Below the pieces are notes generated by a model. It ran no database searches and was not told where the DNA came from. It saw only the letters and a program-made list of their open reading frames with translations. A stretch of 63,307 nucleotides of DNA, the filler included, from Klebsormidium nitens (Eukaryota; Plantae; Klebsormidiophyceae), in the NCBI GenBank assembly GCA_000708835.1. It is 5 parts of 5 records of this genome, joined end to end, with 100 filler letters (N's around TTAATTAATTAA, not from the genome) between each part and the next. Parts side by side here need not be neighbours in the genome. Positions count along the whole stretch, not along the records: positions 6,805 to 27,637 come from DF237416.1; 4 more parts are not named here. One strand, given 5' to 3'. Made by a program: the position numbers and the translations under genes. Positions within the stretch are counted from its first letter, which is position 1, and the number at the start of each line of letters is the position of its first letter. This document shows positions 2,882 through 26,834 of the stretch, piece after piece.

Positions 2882-3324
2882 TGTCACCCGCACATGAGTA
2901 CTGTATATGTGCACTGCCGGCCACGTGTCATATCTGATGTACGCATGGCAGTCGGCGCGCGTATTGGACGCGACGACTCACACATGACACGAATGCATCT
3001 TACTGGATAATGATGCACAACCGGGATGACTCGACCTAGCTCTGTCCAGACTTATCCACGCGGCCATGTCTCATGTATCGATTACTGTGTTCGACTGAGT
3101 ACCTGATAGGAATACCAACCTGGGTATGTAGTACGCTTCGTACGTACCGAGCCAAGAAGGATGGCCTTGAGGGAGAAGGTCAATGAACAAGATCACACTT
3201 CTGGTGCTGATCTGAAGTAAGCGGTTTTTAAGAGCGCGCAGCTGGTGAGCAAGACAAGGGCTTCCGCATATGTAATCTGATCCGCTATATGGTCAGCGTA
3301 GTCTTATAGACCCGTAGCGTATCA
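2882..3324 (+). repeat. Probable 5' LTR of gypsy element 2
   Basis: Begins TGTCAC and ends GTATCA, 1 nt before a tRNA-Met primer-binding site. No second copy is in the window, so the left boundary is tentative. Confidence 0.45.
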
Positions 3325-3325
3325 C

Positions 3326-3336
3326 TGGTATCAGAG
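3326..3336 (+). promoter_or_regulatory. Primer-binding site complementary to the initiator tRNA-Met 3' end
   Basis: TGGTATCAGAG (canonical TGGTATCAGAGC) directly after a CA terminus and upstream of a same-strand gag. Confidence 0.75.
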
Positions 3337-3789
3337 GTTTTCCTCTTTCCTTCTTCCTGAGGAAAGGGCCCCTCTTTCTTGCTTTCAGCTTAGCAGAGCT
3401 TGTTGAGAATCACCCTTCATCACATCATAAGCACGCCATCAAACGCCGCAGGCTTCTCATGCCCGTGGAACACGCCGACACATTCTGAGTTTCACCGGGG
3501 CTGAACGCCCTACACTGAAGCGCCCCTTGTCTCCTAAGCACTTCTCTTAGAATGAATACAATCATCTTCATGTTCGTCTCCTCTATCAAGTCTAGCAGCC
3601 TATCAAATCTGATTACTGTTGTGAGTCTCCAGTCTACCGTTACTGGGTCTATTCCAAGTTCAACACCTTTGGGCTCTAGGCTCTTCTTTACCGTCCGATC
3701 TAACTAACTTTAGAGCCTACGTATCTGGGCCGTCGATAAGCTGTCGGCTGACTCATTATGAGTCAACGACTTCTAACAGCTTGTGCTGC

Positions 3790-4218
3790 ATGTCTGAGAA
3801 CTCCTCAAGCAGTAGCGAGGAGGAAAAGGTATGGCATAGGTTCCCAGCTTGTAACTGCGAATACACCTTCTCTGGTCAGCTCAAGGCCATCCGCCCTGAA
3901 GGTCCCTTCCATCTCCCAGTTAGAGTGTTCCTCGCTAGGAGGAACAACCAGTCCTGTCATTGGGAGATAGATTCATCGTGTGAGGTGCGCCAGGGGGACA
4001 CCATTTTTGACGTGGACTGCCGCATGGGGCGGCATAGGTCACGTTTCTCGTCCGGGAGGCTGGCCTACCCGGTCAGCAGAAAGGACCTGATTTCAAGAGG
4101 CGAGGATCTGAGGCAAGCAGGGTGTGGACCCCGGGCCTTCATGGAGCTTGACGCTAGGGTAGAGGACCTTCAGTCCTACTTCTGGGATAACCAGATTTTC
4201 ACAATCCTGTACCTGTAG
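3790..4218 (+). CDS. Hypothetical 142-aa ORF between PBS and gag of element 2
   Basis: ATG 3790 to TAG 4218, uninterrupted (MSENSSSSSEEEKVWHRFPACNCEYTFSG...). No family recognised. Confidence 0.4.
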   Translation: MSENSSSSSEEEKVWHRFPACNCEYTFSGQLKAIRPEGPFHLPVRVFLARRNNQSCHWEIDSSCEVRQGDTIFDVDCRMGRHRSRFSSGRLAYPVSRKDLISRGEDLRQAGCGPRAFMELDARVEDLQSYFWDNQIFTILYL

Positions 4219-4657
4219 ATAGGAACATACTTACATTGTAGATAACAAATACATTGTAAGTAGACCGTTACCCCATTCTGTTTCATCGGAAGGGTGAGCC
4301 CCGGCTACCGCAGCGCCGTCAAGGCGCTGCGACAATTCAAGTGTTCAGCGCCGCGAAGGCGCTTCCCGAAAGCTGCGGGGCAAATTCTGGACGCCGATTT
4401 CCGTCGTAATTTCCATCGACGGTTAAAATTTAAATTTACCAAATTTTGCTGCACGTGCGCGCGAGTCGACCGGCTGCGACGTCGCAAGTGTGTAACGCCC
4501 TCGCGTCGCTGCGAAGGCATTCACGCTGTCGCGTCGGACGCTGAGGCGACTCGGCGGCGCTGCCCGGGAATTCAGGGAATCGCCCGGTTTGCCGCAACGT
4601 CGCGACAGCGCCTTCAAAGCTTGCTCTCAACCTTCCGATGTTGTTACTCTCTCACCT

Positions 4658-6804: not shown

Positions 6805-6824
6805 TGATCATCGTTCCACGGCAT

Positions 6825-7214: not shown

Positions 7215-10200
7215 ATGGAGTCGTTTCTGAACATTACAGAGCACCTGCTCGACAAAAAGCTGGGCAGGAGCTCCGGACGAGGCCGGGACAGTCCCGGGTC
7301 AAATGCGGGGTCAGCTTCTCGGAGATACTCGAATCAGAGTGACTTCCCAGACCAGCCAAGTCCCAGTTCGCATGGCCACAGTAAAGAGGCCAACCCAGCC
7401 CTGAAGAAGAAGTTCCTTAAGCGGCTGGCGATAGCCTTACATGCGTATGGCAACTCAAGCACGGTGAGTGCCTTTGATGGAATCCCGGTGTCTTCTTTTG
7501 CAAGTGTCTCTATAACATGACATGTCTCTGGGAAGCCACCACTCTGTCTTAGTCTCAGGCTTTGATTGACCACTTGAGAGCACCACCTTTCAATGCCCTC
7601 GTTTTCTGGCGGCACTTCTTACCTTTCCAATTGGCCCCAACCTGGGACAGTATACAGCCTTGTGCCCCTTCTTACTCCCTTTCCAATGATCATATGTGGA
7701 TTCAGAAGATACTGTAAATCAAAAGAGACCTTGTCTTTCACTTCCAGGGTCCTGAGAATTGGCATCTCTCACTGTGTTCTGAAATTCTTCTCCTCCGTTT
7801 GGCACTTCGAGTAATCAATCTCCCTGAACTGCTGGCATCGCATCAACAATGTTCCCTGACCGCCGTCTTTCTGCTCCCCCTGCAGCGCACAGAGTACCTG
7901 GTCGAGAAGGCTAGCCGGCAGCTAAACGTGGCGGCCAGCGTCGCAGTCTTCCCCACCGTCATTCTTCTCTCCTTCCAATCAGATGACCGGGATCCGGCCA
8001 AACCTGAAACGCACCTTCTGACTGTTGAACCGGGCTTGAACGTTGACAAACTGGGGCGGGCCGATGAGCTGGCTAACCGGGTGGGCATGGAGCACATGCC
8101 TCTGCTGGTGAGTTACCAAGGGGCGGGTTAGGATAACATAGGGCGCTTGAAACGCTGGCGGCCACATCTGATTTACAAGCGCCGTTGAGCTCCAAAGCCT
8201 TCTAAAGAAGGCACCCTCATAAAGGCTGTCCACAGAATGTTGCAGTTGGGTGTTTAAGGCAGCTCTGTTATCAAACGCGGCTTTGGTTTCGATTCATGTT
8301 GCTAGAGGATTCAAATGCCGAGGAAGAGGCGGATGCTGTGTGCCTTCTGAGCAGCTCTTGGGTCACTGTTCTGACTTCTTCTCCTGACATACTGCCAGCC
8401 GTACGATCTCGACTTGCTCATTCCACAGCTTTCCTTCGCGACGCCAAAGCTCGTCCATACTTTCCCTCCAGGTCGGTTACTGGCGGCTACGGGCTATTGC
8501 CACGGCCCCCCCGCAGTTCGGGGAGATCAAGCGGCTCCTCAGCTTTGGCGTGGCGGGTTGTACATCGGCCGTGCTCTTCTTCAATGGTGGGCTGGATGAT
8601 CCTCTTACTAAACTTGGTGGCTCGAAAAGCAGAATATCAAGGAGTGTGTGAGCCGAGGTGCACAGATCCGGGCTGGCAGAAGAAGGCTCACGTGGGACTT
8701 TGTGAGGATTGCATTAAACGGCATGGGCATAGATCCGTCTTTTGCCAGTCAGTGAAGATGTTCGCATCAAGCGCTTCAAAAGGCAGTCAAAATATCCGAT
8801 TGATGGGGGTTGGGACGCACCCCGAAGCAAGGGGGCCCGACCTCTACCTGCTTTCCTTCAAGCGCTTCTAAGACCAGTTCTCGCAATGACCAACATTGTC
8901 AAGGGTCGATATGGTTTGAAAGCCCCACTCCCAGAGCTGGCAAGAAAGGCCTAGTGCTGCTTATCAATGGGGTAACCCCCAACTTCGGCGCCCTCTACAG
9001 TGCGCAATGATGGTAGCAACCGTGAAAGCGTCGTTTCTTTGGTCCTGTCTTCTCGACGTCATATGATGTCTTGATTCAAGGCATCGCTGGCTTGTCGAAC
9101 TCTTCGGTTGACACTTGTAAGAACCATTGGCCTTGACATCTCCTGGTTAAAGTAGTCGGATGCGTGCATCCGAACTGATTTGTCGTGCTCGCGACCAGCT
9201 CTTAAGCTCCGCAGGACCGTTCAAAAAGCTGGTGTGAAGGCTCCTGAAAACTTCTACGTCTGAATTTTACTACGAGGGCTTACTCTCTCCTTACTTCCCG
9301 GGGCAGGTACCCTGAACAGCGGCGCCAAACTCTCCACAGGACCGATCAAGGGCCTCTTCTGATGACCCTTCGGGTTTCTCGTGAATTCTCAAGGCCTGAT
9401 GTTTTTAATCGCTCACTCTTGCCCCATTCCTCCCGGGCAGGCAACCTGTACAGCGGCGCCCTGGCGGCCCTCCTGGGCCTGGTCGCCGGGCTGTTCGACC
9501 TGGTCGCCTCGCGCAGTAACGTCTTCGCCAACGTGACCACGTTCCTCTCGGCGACCTGCGTGGCGCTCCTCTCGCGCCTGCTTGCGCTGTACCTGCCCGC
9601 GCGCTTCGACCTCTGCTTCTTCTCCATGACGCTCGGCTCGCTCGTCTGGCTGCTCCCCGGGCTGTCGCTCACGGTCGGGGTCTCGGAGCTGACGTCAGGG
9701 GCCAAGGTGCGTGGCCGCTTCTTAGTCGGACCTTTCCGTGTGTCCGGAAATTCGGTCAAAAGCTTAGGTGCGATACGAGGCGCCGCCGAAGGTGGTGCTC
9801 GTTGAAGCGACGGTCATGCTTGGCAGCCCTCGTTTCACGAATGCTTCCCGCAACTTCGATGACGATTTTTGTCGTTTATCTGCTGGTGACTGACAAGATC
9901 GATCAGCTTGTGGCCCTTTTGACTGCGCTCGAAAGAGGTTTATCAGGCACATCATACAATCAGAGATACACCGAGGTTGTGAACCGCACGCATGTGCGGG
10001 ATGCCTCTAGAAAATCCCAACGTCTGTTCTGGACGAAAAGGCGCCAGCGCTCTTTTCCGAATTCTGAAAACTCCACAGGTCGCCTGCACCGTTTACGAGC
10101 CACGTCCTTTACCCGTGAATCTGGGCTGACAATGAGCTCTCACTCTTTCCAAAGAAAGAGTGCGCACAAAACTACATCTGGATCTGCGACACGTGTCCTC

Positions 10201-19538: not shown

Positions 19539-19769
19539 GAACTTTCGAGCGCGCGCGACCTCGAGCGCGGGCCTGCATGAGCTAGCGATGGTTCAGTTAA
19601 CCCCATATGCAGGTTAGCGGAAAACTCTCCTGGAATCCAAAACTTTCATGCTTGCACAACAGTCAATGACAACACACACAATGCATGGCCGGATCGAACC
19701 TATTCATATCCAGGGCTAATAAGCGGCGGCTCTGCAGCTGTGCACCACTGCAAGAAAAGGCTGGCCAGC

Positions 19770-21877
19770 ATGAAGCTCCGCTTGCGTCATTATCAGGGCG
19801 GTCCCACCCAGCGCCTGGACGTCGAGAGTGATTGCACCTTGCGCTCCCTGAGGGCCGTTGTGGCATCTTTAACCGGGCAAAGCCTTGAGACGGTGCGCAT
19901 CTCGCTCAACAAGGTGGATGAGCTGGACGGACCTGGGAACCTTCTCGTCAGCAGCCTGGGCGTGTGCGGAGGAGACCTCTTGTATCTGCTCGATCCCAGG
20001 AGGCCCAATCAGGTGCAAGCATTGGCAAGCTCCGAGGCGGGTAGAAATGATGTAAGCCAGGCGTCGGCCGCTGCTCCTGTAGCAAATGACCGTAGCAGAG
20101 GGCTGCAGGCGGCATCTTCAACCGGGACCAGCGAGCCTGGAACAAGGACGGAAAGAAACGGTGTCGGGAAAGTGGATGTTGCGCAAGAGAGGCGAGAGCG
20201 GTGCGCCGCGGCCGCGGCAAAGAGGGTTGCGGGCCTGGCGGGAGACGGACCTGCGGATGCTCTTCCCCTTCCTCTTAAAGCCCCAGCAATGAATCCAACA
20301 TCGATGGAAATCGATAATGCTACACCTGGGGCCACTGCAGAGCCCCCTGCCTCCGAAAACAGTGAACAAAGCTCGATCAGCACCGCTCCTCCTGTCCTCC
20401 AAGAAGTGGTCTCAACGTCCGCTTGGGCAGTGCACTCTGCGCACGACCTCCTGATTCTGGCCCTTCACGCTGTCATGCTCGAAACCGGATTCAGCTTGGT
20501 TCCAATCGGCGCACCTCTGGAGCAATGCTGGGAGCGGGTGGGGGGCCGGACAATTCTTCGCTACACGCTCGCAAACCGGGACGCAAACCCTACTCTGACC
20601 GCTATCTTGCGGAGCCAGCAACTAGGCGCGAACCTGCTGGTGTACGGGACCTACGACGGGGACGCTGGGGGCGCTGTATACCGCCTGAACCTAGCCCTCT
20701 CAGCGCAACTCCGGCCATTCCCCCCAGCAGGGGAGAGAAGCACCGCGGAGCTGCTCGCCCTCTTCAAAAACGCGCGGCAGCTGTTTGTCGAGGCCAAAGA
20801 TGGGCTCTCGGTGCCGCTTCTGAGCCTCCTGTGCCAGCGCGCGGGCGTGTCACCGCCGGCTTCGCTCATCCTCCTCCCCTTTGATGCCAAGAACAACATC
20901 CTCGCAAAACTCTCGGCGCGCGACCTGGCGGCCGTCGCGGTGACCTGTTCGGAGCTTCGGGAGGCGGCGTCGGGCGACGACTTCTGGAGGGCCCTCTTTC
21001 AGAGGGAGTTTCCAAACGAGCGGCCTGCCGTGCGGGCAGGGATGTGGAAGGAGGCATTCCGCATGGCCTGGGTGGACCGCAAGCTGCAGCGCGAGAGGCG
21101 GCTGGAGTACGAGCGGCAGCTGCACGTGGGACGCAGGGAGTGGCGCGGTTTTCGCTACCAGCCCCCTGGGATGGTTGGTGAGTTCCGCCGTTGCAGTATT
21201 GAATGTCATTGTTCTTGGAAAATTTTGTGTTCCTATGGGGGCTTAACAAAGGTAACTGTGTATTGGTTTGTCTTTGAGACCTTGTTTGCTCCATCACGTC
21301 TCTGGCTTTTCGACTGTTGAACATAGACTTGGATGCTGACCTTGCCTTGACACTGGCTTCCTGAAGCAGGTCAGGTCGAACCATTCCGTGCTGCGACAAA
21401 TGATGCAGCCGTATCCAGCAACGGATCTGCATTTAGCTGTACCCACCAACTGCTTTGCATCTATTATAGACGTCATTACATCACTCAATCAGCATAACAT
21501 GGCTTTTCCTTAGCATAACATGGCTTTTCCTTACAGGAGGCGACTATGATCGGTTTCCCTTTGGTGGAGGTGCCGGCGTTCCCCCCGGAGGTTTCCCTGG
21601 GGGCTTAGGGGGCGGTCCGTTTGGCATCCCACAAGGAGGAGCCTTTCCGGGTGGCCATCTTGACGGAGGGTTTAGCCCCAGCTTAGGGCCGGATGCACTA
21701 GACTGGCCCCACGGAGGCCGAGCACGATTTGAAGCGGGGTTGGGACCGCAGGGGGGCGTCGGCATGCCTGGGATTCCGGGAAGTAACCTGCCCGGGTTCG
21801 GACCTGGCTTAAGAGGGGGGCCGCCCCGGGGCGGAAGACCGGGAAGAGGTGGCTTCTCCGGTTCGTCGATCATCTGA
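19770..21877 (+). CDS. F-box protein of FBXO7/SKIP22 type (ubiquitin-like, PI31/FP, F-box, Gly/Pro-rich tail), 2 exons
   Basis: Ubl-like MKLRLR..ISLNK..LSSLGVCGGDLLYL; FP domain HDLLILALHAVMLETGF; F-box LILLPFDAKNNILAKLSARDLAAVAVTCSELR..DDFWR. Intron 21178-21536 joins in frame to GGDYDRFP; stop TGA 21875-21877. Confidence 0.85.
21491..21532 (+). repeat. Perfect 21-bp tandem duplication at the 3' end of the F-box intron
   Basis: AGCATAACATGGCTTTTCCTT twice, followed by ACAG|GAGG. Confidence 0.95.
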
Positions 21878-22874: not shown

Positions 22875-25800
22875 TCACCGACCGCTCGTCGCCATCTCCT
22901 TCTTCGCGGTCGACGGCAGCGCCTCGATCGTGCACTTCGGCCCGTACAACCACTGTCCAACGACCGTTGCAAAGAATGCGCCGCCGAAATCTGCTTCGGT
23001 GGTGATGCCCACAAGAGAAATGCCCGGGGCCACTGCGCTGGTCGCCCCCGCCGGTGCGACCTGCCACTCCTTGCTCAGCGCGACGGGGCGACCGGGGCTG
23101 TCGGGCACCTTGCTCTCGCTGATGGCGTACACGGGGAGGCCCGGGATGACGTCACGGACAACATCGATGGCTGCCGCGTCAGTCTGCGAGGAGCAAATGG
23201 AGCGTTGAGGGGGATGGGCAATCATCGAATGGAAGCTGTCCATCCTTCAAGGAGGACGCTGCCTGCGAAGTATCACGTAGCAGCAACTTGACCGTAGTCG
23301 AAAATCGGGCGAGTACGGTGTACAAGGTGTACAAGATTGCCATAGGGTAGAATTTTGACATGGGTTTCCATGCCGTTCTTCCCGGAAACTCGATCTGACA
23401 AACCGCCTCACCCCTTGATGGCTCATCTTTTGGGCCATCACTTATGTCACAGGTCAGTTTCGGGGTGCAAAAGAGAGACTCCATCGAAGCTGCTAGAAGA
23501 GTCGGCTCAAAAGGGGAGCACAGAAATCGGTGCCTACCTGTGGGCTCGAAACAATGATGACCGCCTTCAGCTTCTTCCCCACTGCCTTTGCGCGCAGGCC
23601 CTCAGCAGCCATTTCGGCCGCCAGCCGGGGAGAGCCAGTCGTAATCTGCAGGATAGAAGAAATGCTCATCAACAGCGGTCGATATTTTGGCGTGGGATAA
23701 GGTTAGTAAACACATCAAACCAAGGATTGAAAGGGGATCTTCGGGATTGACCTTAAAGCCCGCCGGACGTCAAGCCTCAATCAATAGCCTTTGCTTCAAA
23801 CATGAGGAGTCGATCGCGTTGCCTCAAGGGACATATCATTTTCGCGCAAACTTCGCCTGCTGATGCACTCGTTTTGCTTCTACAGAAACAGCATTCGGCA
23901 GTGCTTGTCAGGATTGGTACAGCAGACAGTGGAAGAATACATGCAAGGCGTAGTTCATCGACCGCAGTATCTTGCATCAGAGCGCCCCATCTTTTAATGA
24001 GCTTCTCTTGAAGCACGCAGAGACAAACGCTGGATCTGGACCTTCCGTCAGCTTGCTATACGGCAACCAAATGTCAAGCGCTGACTTTCCCTCACCGAAA
24101 GAAACGTCACAGCTCGAAAGTGGTCTAAAACCAAAAGCTGCCTTTTTCTTTCTAGCTTCAAAACCGCCTCTGGACCCTCACCGTGGATCCGTTTGCCACC
24201 ACCCGGCCCTGTGCCGAGAACAGCAGCACAGCCGCCCACTCCTTCTCCTTCTCCTCCCCCGCCCCATTCCCATCCGCCCCAGTGATCCCCCACGTGCAGA
24301 TCCCCTGCAGGTTGCAGTCCGCCGGGAGCGTCGACCTCAGCGCAACCACCGCTTCCGCCGTGCTGCCCCAGGTGAAGTCCTCGCTTGCCAGACCAATGCG
24401 GCCCGAGCTGAGCGCAACAAAGGCGAGCGTCTGGTGCAGGGGTCCTAGGGATTGGGAGGCGGCGCGATACGCCCCCTGGAGAGCACGCGTGATCGTGGCT
24501 TCTTGGCAGAAGCTGGACCCGACGCCGAGCTGGCCGTCAGTGGGCTGCGGGGAGAAGGGAGAGGAGGTGTTGTGAGACAGTCTGTGGCCGATATGTTGCG
24601 GCCTGAAGACTGGAGACAGGGGATAGACGTATTCCTGAGAAGAAGGGCTCGACTCGGGGTTCGCCCAACACTTCGAGAATGTTGCCTTCAATCGACATCA
24701 GGTGCACAGCTCTATGTGAGTATCTTTTTGACAAGCAATTTGCAATGCTTCCTTGCGTCCTCACCTGTGGTTGCTTTTCCGCAATGTCCGTCGTCTCGAG
24801 AGGCACCAGCCCGTCCGGCAGGATGTCTGTCAGAGACACCGAGGTTTCGCTAGCAGCCTCGTCCTTGTGTGCGCTCACAACAGACTCCACTGCAGCAGCC
24901 CCGTTCTGCGCTTCCTTCTTGTCTTCAATGACCAGTGACGGGGTCACTTCTGCTTCTTCAATGACAGCCGACGCGATCACTTCCGGAACGGGCGCCTCCG
25001 CTGTATCTACAGTCACCGCTGAGGCGCTCGCTTCCGGTTTCACCAGCTCAGGCTGCTGCTTTTCTGCTTCACGCGTGACACTGGTCAAGACCACCATGGG
25101 GGCTTTGACTGCGCGCCCGTTTTCTCCTTCAGGCGCTGCCATAGGTGTGGGTGGATCGGCTGAAGCAGCTTCCGGCAAGCTGGGGGCTGGAAGCTCTGTG
25201 GGAGCAAGGGGGGCCGGGGTCGCTTCTGTCTCCGCCGCTGGAGTGCTGGCCACGATCGGATCCAGAGGAGTTGCGGTTGGTGACGAAACGGAAGGAGGGG
25301 GTGCTACAGCTTCCACAGGGGCAGGAGGGGGTGCTACAGCCGCCGGGGGTTGTGCCACACTTGCTTCGTCTGCGACCACAGGGTTTGCCGCAGCCTCTGC
25401 TGGGGGAGGGACCACCGGGGTTTCACCAGTGGGGCGGGGAGCGGCAACGGCAGCAATGATCTCAGCTGCTTGCAGGCTGTCCGTCTTGGTGTTGTCGACA
25501 GTGGAGGCAGCAAGCGGGGATGCGAACCCAGCGGCCGGAAGTGGGGGCTGTGTCTCCTCGACGGCAGCAAGCTTCTTCCCCTTCATGAGATCGTACGCGT
25601 AGGCTGCCGCTGCTGCTCCCAGAAGGGCGAGCCCCACCCCGATCGCCCAGCCTGTCTGCGGCTTGCGGGAAGGCACTGGGCAGGTGGGGGGGGGCGCCGG
25701 GCACACGCTTGCGACAATGGCCGCCTGCGGTTTGGAGTTGGCGGGGATGCGCAGCGTTTGCTGCGGGAGGATCGTGCTCTTGAAGTGCAGCTTGTTGAGC

Positions 25801-26834
25801 TTGACGAGCTCGGTCATGGACACGCCGTACCTCTCGGCGATAGTGAAGAGGCTGTCGCCTGACTGCACAACGTACTGCAGCTCTCCAGATGCTGTAATCG
25901 TGTCCAAGACCGCACCAGTCTCAGCAACGGCTGCAGGAGTGGACTGCGCCGGGACTTTGACTGGTTGACGAGGAGAGGCCTTGGAAGGAGGCGCTTTTCC
26001 TGCATAGAATGAAGCGCATCGTTATGCAGGCTCGTAACATACGGGCAAAAGAGTGTCAGCTTGCAGTGGACATCTAGACCAACTACCAAAGCAAGGCCGT
26101 CACTTGGTGTCAAGGACTGACAACAGCATACTCTTCTCAGACAACGAACCGTGCTCCAGACCTGAGCAACTGGCTGCACGTCAGCTGCTATGGTAAGCCG
26201 GATATGCTGCAGACCACTATTTGCATCTCCTCTTGGTGCCAATCTCATTCTGTTCACACAATTGCTTTCACCCTCAACATCGAACGAATGCACTGCGTTT
26301 GAATCGGAGGTCTAGTGACATACCCTTTGGTGGACAGATCCCTGGCACATCCATGCCCTTCGCCGCCCCTGCTGTTGCAACAGCCCTCAACTTTGGCACC
26401 ACGATCGTCTGCTTCGGTCGCACATAGTCGAGGGCCACACCCGGATTGAGCTCGTGCAATGTCTTGAGGTCCGTTTCATAAAGCTGCGCAATCTTGGACA
26501 TAACCTGACCCCTCTGGACAACGTGCATTTGCGTCTCAGGCTCTGCTGGTCGCCCTGCAGCCGCATTCTTGCCAAACGGCAGACTTAGGGCTGCCAATGG
26601 TGGGAATGTGGATTGGCCCAAGTCTGCGGTCATCACCACGCCCAGCTTTGCTCGGCGCTTCTGATGCCGCCAACCTGCGGCTGGAGAAGCCTCTAGTGAA
26701 GGGCCGATCCTGCACCGCTCTAGGGAGAGCAAGGTGAAACTTTCGGCAGCCTGAGATTTTAGGGTTCTGAGCTGGGGCCCAGTGCTGTGCAGACCCCCAC
26801 ATTTTGCTTGGCAGGCGACCGCAGAGGACGCCAT
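22875..26834 (-). CDS. Predicted plastid-targeted LysM-LysM-TM-(Pro/Ala/Glu linker)-FIST_N protein, ~841 aa, 5 exons
   Basis: Exons 26834-26324, 25999-24765, 24544-24182, 23645-23538, 23183-22875, all GT-AG and frame-preserving. LysM1 HVVQRGQVMSKIAQLY..LHELNP; LysM2 YVVQSGDSLFTIAERYGVSMTELVKLN..QTLRIP; TM GWAIGVGLALLGAAAAAYAY; FIST_N-like GVGSSF..RALQGAYRAASQSLG..LAFVALSS..LPADCNLQGICTWGITG. The FIST call is by pattern only. Confidence 0.7.

Follow-up and report, generated by a model that had tools for sequence, protein, structure and literature searches.

A LysM-containing single-pass membrane protein of Klebsormidium nitens with a divergent C-terminal domain, a possible peptidoglycan tether of the plastid envelope

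The hydrolase DipM was the only plastid-related LysM protein described in the literature searched. It combines LysM with an M23 peptidase domain, acts on plastid peptidoglycan and is found in Klebsormidium (PMC4015805). Streptophyte algae, bryophytes and lycophytes possess a full toolkit for peptidoglycan synthesis (PMC13519894), and the plastid wall of Klebsormidium nitens was visualised by Takano et al. (2018), as cited in PMC9434261. Here we describe a K. nitens gene located on the minus strand at positions 26834-22875 of the analyzed window, a stretch of 63,307 nucleotides joined from five parts of assembly GCA_000708835.1, of which positions 6,805 to 27,637 come from DF237416.1. The gene encodes two LysM domains, one predicted transmembrane (TM) segment, a long spacer and a C-terminal domain (C-domain). 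We tentatively regard its product as a plastid-envelope tether or adaptor that may bind peptidoglycan via LysM.

The protein shares N-terminal LysM repeats with DipM and NlpD, and targeting to peptidoglycan by LysM is likely the common logic. However, no match to the M23 peptidase (PF01551) was detected in any member of the new family, and the K. nitens protein additionally contains a TM helix, with a FIST-like domain predicted on the far side of the membrane. DipM also occurs in moss and glaucophytes, where the new family was not found. The plant LysM receptors LYK/NFP and CEBiP/LYP likewise contain LysM repeats, a single TM and an intracellular domain, and weak matches to LYK/NFP LysM sub-models were obtained. 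In contrast to LYK/NFP, no Pkinase match was detected in the K. nitens protein (P0001) or in its relatives P0017, P0018 and P0022, and there was no signal peptide. In contrast to LYK and CEBiP, there was neither a GPI signal nor a CxC-linked three-LysM ectodomain signature above threshold. The likeness to the plastid-division proteins ARC6/PARC6 and PDV1/PDV2 is one of functional analogy only. These are single-pass envelope proteins with a folded domain on each side, which couple the stromal, intermembrane-space and cytosolic division machinery. They have no sequence or domain relation to the new family, and none of them binds peptidoglycan through LysM. The initial annotation of the locus did not recognise its architecture, and the literature searched contained no description of it: no paper named kfl00467, and none combined LysM and 'FIST domain'. 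LysM, single-pass receptors and FIST are each known, while their combination and the C-terminal family are unannotated.

The exons were joined by script from the minus-strand reading of 27100-22600. All four introns were GT..AG, and the joined coding sequence was one open frame of 2526 nt encoding 841 aa. The features of the gene and its product are as follows.

26834-26324, minus strand: exon 1, ATG at 26834, encoding residues 1-170 and base 1 of codon 171, with a presequence-like N-terminus followed by LysM domain 1
26394-26525, minus strand: LysM domain 1, residues 104-147 (Pfam PF01476, E 3.7e-7, 30.4 bits)
26323-26000, minus strand: intron 1, 324 nt, GTATGT...ATGCAG, phase 1
25999-24765, minus strand: exon 2, with a linker, LysM domain 2, the TM helix, KGKK and the acidic Ala/Pro/Glu-rich spacer
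25743-25874, minus strand: LysM domain 2, residues 213-256 (Pfam PF01476, E 7.3e-13, 48.7 bits)
25587-25652, minus strand: predicted TM segment, residues 287-308, GWAIGVGLALLGAAAAAYAYDL, then M-KGKK
24765-25571, minus strand: low-complexity spacer, about residues 313-582, ~270 aa
24764-24545, minus strand: intron 2, 220 nt, GTGAGG...CCGCAG, joining the LysM-TM half to the C-terminal domain
24544-24182, minus strand: exon 3, residues 583-703, the first 121 residues of the C-terminal domain
24181-23646, minus strand: intron 3, 536 nt, GTGAGG...CTGCAG
23645-23538, minus strand: exon 4, 36 residues, 704-739
23537-23184, minus strand: intron 4, 354 nt, GTAGGC...TCGCAG
23183-22875, minus strand: exon 5, residues 740-841 and the stop codon TGA at 22877-22875

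The 841-aa product was identical to a protein listed by NCBI as 'hypothetical protein KFL_004670040 [Klebsormidium nitens]' and in UniRef as 'LysM domain-containing protein'. The gene model is already public, and its functional annotation holds nothing past LysM. The initial annotation had joined several open reading frames (ORFs) into one gene through four canonical introns, which agrees with the 841-aa frame matching KFL_004670040 and with the colinear exons of the relatives described below. Reading through intron 1 in the frame of exon 1 led to a stop at 26274-26276, and the length of intron 2 is not a multiple of 3. At the exon 2/3 junction, CAACCACAG is followed by gtgagg at 24765/24764, and the acceptor ...cccttctccccgcag is followed by CCCACTGAC at 24545/24544. 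This key junction was exactly as given in the initial annotation, with the same donor and acceptor letters. An exon 5 acceptor at 23263 was tried and rejected; it broke the frame, which was open only with 23184/23183. The GC content was 63% in exons, with 67% at third codon positions (GC3), and 48-52% in introns.

Klebsormidium-like relatives were recovered via exon-2 ORFs, one (L001) from the Logan run SRR23617307 and two (L002 and L003) from the JGI metagenomes 3300060285 and 3300060284. All five exons were present in L001 and L002 in the same order and orientation as in K. nitens, and exon 1 and Met1 were kept in both. The identities of exons 1-5 to the K. nitens protein were 79, 67, 96, 68 and 91% in L001 and 54, 39, 75, 70 and 79% in L002, indicating that the C-terminal domain is the most constrained part and exon 2, which is mostly spacer, the least. 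The spacer is the fastest-evolving part of the gene. The gap at the position of intron 2 was ~470 nt in L001 and ~690 nt in L002, compared with 220 nt in K. nitens. The ORFs called in the relatives ran through the exon-2 donor as ...PQ-VRT; therefore, the CAG/GTGAGG donor appears to be conserved.

The exon 2/3 junction falls within a linker that is not conserved and is hence beyond confirmation by alignment, and the gene model could be an artefact combining a LysM-TM gene (exons 1-2) with a separate C-domain gene (exons 3-5) arranged head to tail. Such an artefact is hardly conceivable, since the fusion recurs in the models of Chara and Spirogloea and as one uninterrupted ORF on cDNA-like contigs. 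Exon 3 is devoid of Met, which first occurs in the C-domain at residue 715, and intron 2 has only 220 nt. Conservation of the exon-2 donor and of the exon order and spacing pattern across three Klebsormidium-like genomes also argues against two genes. The LysM-TM-C-domain fusion is almost certainly one nuclear gene encoding one protein.

The distribution of the family was analyzed by an exhaustive HMMER search of 1.84 billion representatives at E <= 0.001, using residues 583-841 as a single-sequence query. Eleven proteins were found, most of which were Klebsormidium-like fragments together with three repeat-protein artefacts. The family members included Chara braunii CBR_g40652 (P0017, 1396 aa, four LysM by Pfam), Spirogloea muscicola SM000048S16509 (P0018, 643 aa, at least two LysM by Pfam) and P0022 (870 aa, three LysM by Pfam). 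A partial protein from Cymbomonas tetramitiformis (P0023) covered the C-terminal part of the C-domain. In P0017, P0018 and P0022, one hydrophobic segment followed the LysM repeats at the equivalent relative position, and the C-domain was located at the extreme C-terminus. The linker from the TM to the C-domain was far shorter in the other members than in K. nitens. The most conserved motif of the family, G-[IV]-S-L-x-G-[IV]-T-x-x-A-x-F-G-G-A-x-x-A-x-V-x-G-x-W-L-Y-G, was encoded by exon 5. The public model of the Spirogloea protein begins inside a LysM domain (MQRRQWVAAVAKRRGVPLEELRRLNPG...) and is therefore probably truncated at the N-terminus, with the first exon or exons missing.

P0022 was encoded by an uninterrupted ORF on three contigs of ~3 kb (L004-L006, Logan SRR8128905-7). 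The 5' ends of these contigs agreed within 6 nt, an in-frame stop was located upstream of the ATG, and in two of them, L004 and L006, an Illumina adapter was attached directly to the 3' end. No paper naming these runs was found in the literature searched. These features suggest that the contigs are cDNA-like, not genomic. The alignment of the spliced K. nitens protein with P0022 was free of indels at both the exon 3/4 and the exon 4/5 junction. The P0022 ORF displayed 48% GC and a GC3 of 39%, unlike the GC3 of 67% in K. nitens.

Neither a land-plant nor a bacterial relative of the C-domain was detected by the exhaustive search, and no members from moss, lycophytes, glaucophytes or Micromonas were found. 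A moss orthologue, which had been proposed as a knock-out target, was thus not among the matches of this search. Word-index searches with the C-domain alone, or as a region of the full protein, returned only the protein itself and Klebsormidium-like fragments. Metagenome contigs scanned with a family alignment (A2) gave 121 pattern matches, of which none was confirmed; another alignment (A1) offered no conserved stretch suited to such a scan. The proteins form a small single-pass membrane protein family specific to green algae. Its members carry a presequence-like N-terminus, two to four LysM domains, a single TM helix flanked C-terminally by basic residues, a disordered linker whose length varies, and a conserved alpha/beta domain of ~260 aa at the C-terminus, which constitutes an as yet unannotated family.

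The domains proposed for the N-terminal half in the initial annotation were largely recovered. Both LysM domains scored above the Pfam threshold, and the whole-protein LysM (PF01476) score was 75.7 bits against a gathering score of 20.9. The single TM segment followed by basic residues was found as well, though the helix is weakly hydrophobic; it was the sole 19-residue Kyte-Doolittle window of the protein at or above 1.5, and its maximum of 1.62 is marginal. The low-complexity spacer, given as ~300 aa, measured ~270 aa and was followed by a folded C-terminal domain (residues 583-841, 259 aa, from exons 3-5). Ala made up 21.5% of the spacer, Pro 16%, and Val and Glu 11% each; its net charge was -28. 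A long acidic Ala/Pro-rich spacer was peculiar to Klebsormidium; the stretch between the TM and the C-domain was only ~80-105 residues in Chara, Spirogloea and P0022.

The N-terminus was judged by composition and hydropathy. The first 60 residues of the K. nitens protein were Ser/Thr/Ala-rich, with 8 basic and 3 acidic residues and a maximum 8-residue Kyte-Doolittle mean of 1.55. Across the three N-termini of P0001, P0017 and P0022, the first 60 residues were rich in Ser/Thr and contained 6-8 basic as well as 1-3 acidic residues, and none of the three contained a hydrophobic core (8-residue Kyte-Doolittle maximum ~1.5). By composition, the N-terminus resembles an organellar presequence rather than a signal peptide, which is in agreement with the transit-peptide-like start noted initially.

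The C-domain had been described as FIST_N-like. In Pfam, FIST_N (PF08495) matched the K. nitens protein at 13.3-13.5 bits (E 0.07-0.08) over profile positions 16-96 of 189, below the gathering score of 23.2. Exons 3, 4 and 5 searched singly against Pfam gave nothing, and only noise was obtained with NCBIfam on four C-domains or with phmmer of three C-domains against PDB sequences. A family profile searched against PDB sequences reached FBXO22 at E 0.43, in the same stretch as the FIST_N match. AlphaFold on the 11-row family alignment (A1) predicted an alternating beta/alpha fold with a predicted local distance difference test score (pLDDT) of 72.6 and a predicted template modelling score (pTM) of 0.75; a single-sequence model of the C-domain (pLDDT 48) was unusable. 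When the alignment-based model was compared with the PDB by Foldseek, the best match was the FBXO22 cryo-EM chain 8ua3_C (E 1e-4, probability 1.00, 246 columns). FBXO22 was also found at rank 2 (8ua6_C, E 1.7e-4, probability 1.00), the top two matches covering 244-246 columns, and at rank 17 (8s7d_D). The next matches, at E 1e-3 to 1e-2, were cyanuric acid hydrolase, proteins of the ThiL/PurM type and the GTPase lobe of FtsZ; they reflect generic alpha/beta similarity.

The likeness to FBXO22 and FIST consists of a top structural match of near full length (246 columns) and a weak sequence signal in the stretch matching the FIST_N core. As in FBXO22, the domain is without catalytic output and could be a binding module. 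It differs from FIST in its length, 259 residues compared with roughly 300 or more for FIST_N plus FIST_C, and in being fused to LysM and a TM, not to an F-box or to bacterial signalling domains. Judged from the predicted model, the fold of the C-domain is rather probably FIST-like. The domain is very divergent, and by the family's own sequence criteria it is not a FIST member. The initial assignment was thus supported in part: FBXO22 was the top match of the AlphaFold model, at a TM-score of only 0.42, and the sequence signal was at noise level, FIST_N remaining below threshold and FIST_C undetected.

Two other readings of the C-domain were rejected. An FtsZ-like reading covered only ~112 columns at a TM-score of 0.2, a generic Rossmann-like similarity. 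TAL-effector-like repeats were indicated by matches to TALE structures in PDB (E down to 2e-12) and by three proteins (P0015, P0019 and P0020), and these matches are sums of sub-threshold stretches, each with an i-Evalue of at least 0.07. The query is without a tandem repeat of ~34 residues, and the model at this place is strand-helix, not a helical hairpin. Residues ~647-665 and 730-760 resemble the TAL-effector repeat consensus (LP..C...G; VV.IAS......A.E.V...LP.L). The motifs matched were 'A-x-E-x-V-x-x-L-x-x-L-P-x-x-C-x-x-x-G' and 'V-V-x-I-A-S', and they inflate the whole-protein E-values for TALE structures and giant repeat proteins.

The orientation of the protein in its membrane had been derived from the positive-inside rule. 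This argument was weak in K. nitens, where 2 Lys/Arg (K/R) residues precede the TM and 3 follow it, before the spacer with its net charge of -28. It was clearer in the relatives, with 1 vs 5 K/R in Spirogloea P0018 and 1 vs 4 in P0022. In Chara, 2 K/R were located before the TM and 1 within 15 residues after it, and an Arg cluster (RRVRFGR) was found just beyond. The LysM region before the TM comprised 280-970 residues across the family and had no signal peptide. In the endoplasmic reticulum (ER) pathway, a long N-terminal domain without a signal peptide normally stays cytosolic, in conflict with the basic flank located C-terminal of the helix. The conflict would be resolved if the protein were imported post-translationally into an organelle via its presequence-like N-terminus. 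Insertion into the inner envelope combined with the positive-inside rule would then place the C-domain in the stroma and the LysM domains in the intermembrane space, where peptidoglycan lies.

Two different locations outside the plastid have to be weighed against such an import. The protein may reside at the cell surface or in endomembranes as a receptor-like LysM protein that lacks a kinase, the algal equivalent of LysM-RLK or CEBiP receptors. Its LysM repeats would then sense microbial chitin or peptidoglycan outside the cell, and the FIST-like domain would signal in the cytosol. The order of LysM repeats, single TM, basic flank and intracellular domain is that of plant LysM receptors, and the family-wide positive-inside bias would make the C-domain cytosolic. 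Sub-threshold or borderline matches were obtained with LysM3_LYK4_5 for the K. nitens protein (25.5 bits, cutoff 29.3) and with LysM_RLK for the Chara protein (42 bits). We consider this unlikely, since none of the three full-length N-termini carried a signal peptide, all being presequence-like instead, and ER translocation of 280-970 residues of folded N-terminal domain without a signal peptide is not expected. A kinase or other output domain was missing, and in the exhaustive search no member came from the numerous green algae and land plants equipped with LysM immunity receptors. The same lack of a signal peptide would fit a type II signal anchor with cytosolic LysM domains and a C-domain in the lumen or exterior, unrelated to plastid peptidoglycan. 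The animal proteins LYSMD3 and LYSMD4 have such a layout, with an N-terminal LysM, an internal TM and no signal peptide. This arrangement is highly unlikely here. The basic flank is located C-terminal of the helix in all members, as in P0018 (1 vs 5 K/R) and P0022 (1 vs 4), contrary to an N-in ER orientation; the exhaustive search displayed no sequence relation to animal LYSMD proteins; and the C-domain has few Cys and resembles the cytosolic FBXO22.

For the plastid-envelope tether or adaptor, the following mechanism is proposed. The protein would be imported into the plastid and sit in an envelope membrane. Its LysM repeats may be located in the intermembrane space and attach to the peptidoglycan layer of the plastid, a role also presumed for the LysM of DipM. 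The FIST-like domain would be located on the other face, which is stromal if the membrane is the inner envelope, and might bind a protein partner or a small ligand, thereby coupling the wall to machinery inside. FBXO22 uses its FIST region for substrate binding, and no enzymatic or signalling output domain was detected in the Pfam results for the protein. For these two reasons a wall-to-membrane tether or adaptor is favoured over the classical sensor suggested initially, the former being at least as likely as the latter.

The taxonomic distribution is in part consistent with this proposal. Every named family member came from a lineage reported to have plastid peptidoglycan or its genes. The sole chlorophyte match, Cymbomonas, belongs to the small number of chlorophytes that possess the pathway, which was predicted to be complete and is 'uncommon in the Chloroplastida' (PMC5741210). 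The nearest LysM matches outside the family included bacterial NlpD/M23-type proteins. A co-occurrence with peptidoglycan genes, which had been suggested as a check, was thus observed in one direction, all named members belonging to such lineages.

Several observations weigh against the tether. The co-occurrence was one-sided, as mosses, lycophytes, glaucophytes and Micromonas keep peptidoglycan genes and gave no match at E <= 0.001, and it rests on about five taxa. LysM domains bind chitin too. In K. nitens, the helix is marginal (1.62) and the charge bias (2 vs 3) is by itself too weak to decide the topology, and a simple stop-transfer into the inner envelope, as in ARC6-type insertion, would leave the LysM half in the stroma, the opposite topology. 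For the C-domain, the sub-threshold FIST_N match was present in one of the four full-length members (K. nitens, not Chara, Spirogloea or P0022), and FIST_C (PF10442) gave no match at E <= 10 on the C-domain or on exon 5 alone. The structural matches to FBXO22 reached TM-scores of only 0.36-0.42 (0.41-0.42 for the top two), with a root-mean-square deviation of ~11 A (10.9). Taken with these points, a plastid-envelope protein that binds peptidoglycan is a possible but somewhat doubtful identity.

The neighbouring genes of the window were also inspected. An uninterrupted ORF of 526 aa at 19740-21320 on the plus strand encoded an F-box (PF12937/PF00646, above threshold). It displayed weak matches to PI31_Prot_N and to a ubiquitin-like N-terminal domain, an FBXO7-like layout, and is oriented convergently to the LysM gene. 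In each of L001, L002 and L003, an F-box/PI31_N ORF (483-504 aa) was found at the equivalent position and orientation, indicating that the F-box/LysM gene pair is syntenic. At 9362-9805 on the plus strand, an ORF fragment matched the ThrE putative threonine/serine exporter family (PF06738, E 4.8e-10) and is probably one exon of a multi-exon gene. In L002, a reverse-transcriptase (RVT_1) ORF of 507 aa was located at 2899-4422 on the minus strand, ~4.6 kb upstream of the LysM gene; as far as examined, the window contained none at the matching place.

The protein may be an unrecognised envelope-spanning component that, via its LysM repeats in the intermembrane space and a divergent FIST-like domain, physically connects the relict wall with machinery in the stroma, for instance division proteins or the synthesis of wall precursors. 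Streptophyte algae and a prasinophyte with peptidoglycan would have retained it, and in land plants it would have disappeared or changed too far to be recognised. This extended proposal is rather unlikely as a whole. If true, the protein would be the first one known to be dedicated to coupling wall and membrane in a green plastid. If it is instead a surface receptor, it would represent a non-kinase type of LysM receptor in the algal kin of land plants, relevant to the origin of plant immunity and symbiosis receptors. The finding bears on how the thin peptidoglycan layer in green plastids is placed and sensed, and on how it is kept in step with the division ring. In K. nitens, a conserved membrane protein that pairs LysM repeats on one face with a folded binding domain on the opposite face would provide a testable candidate for such coupling.

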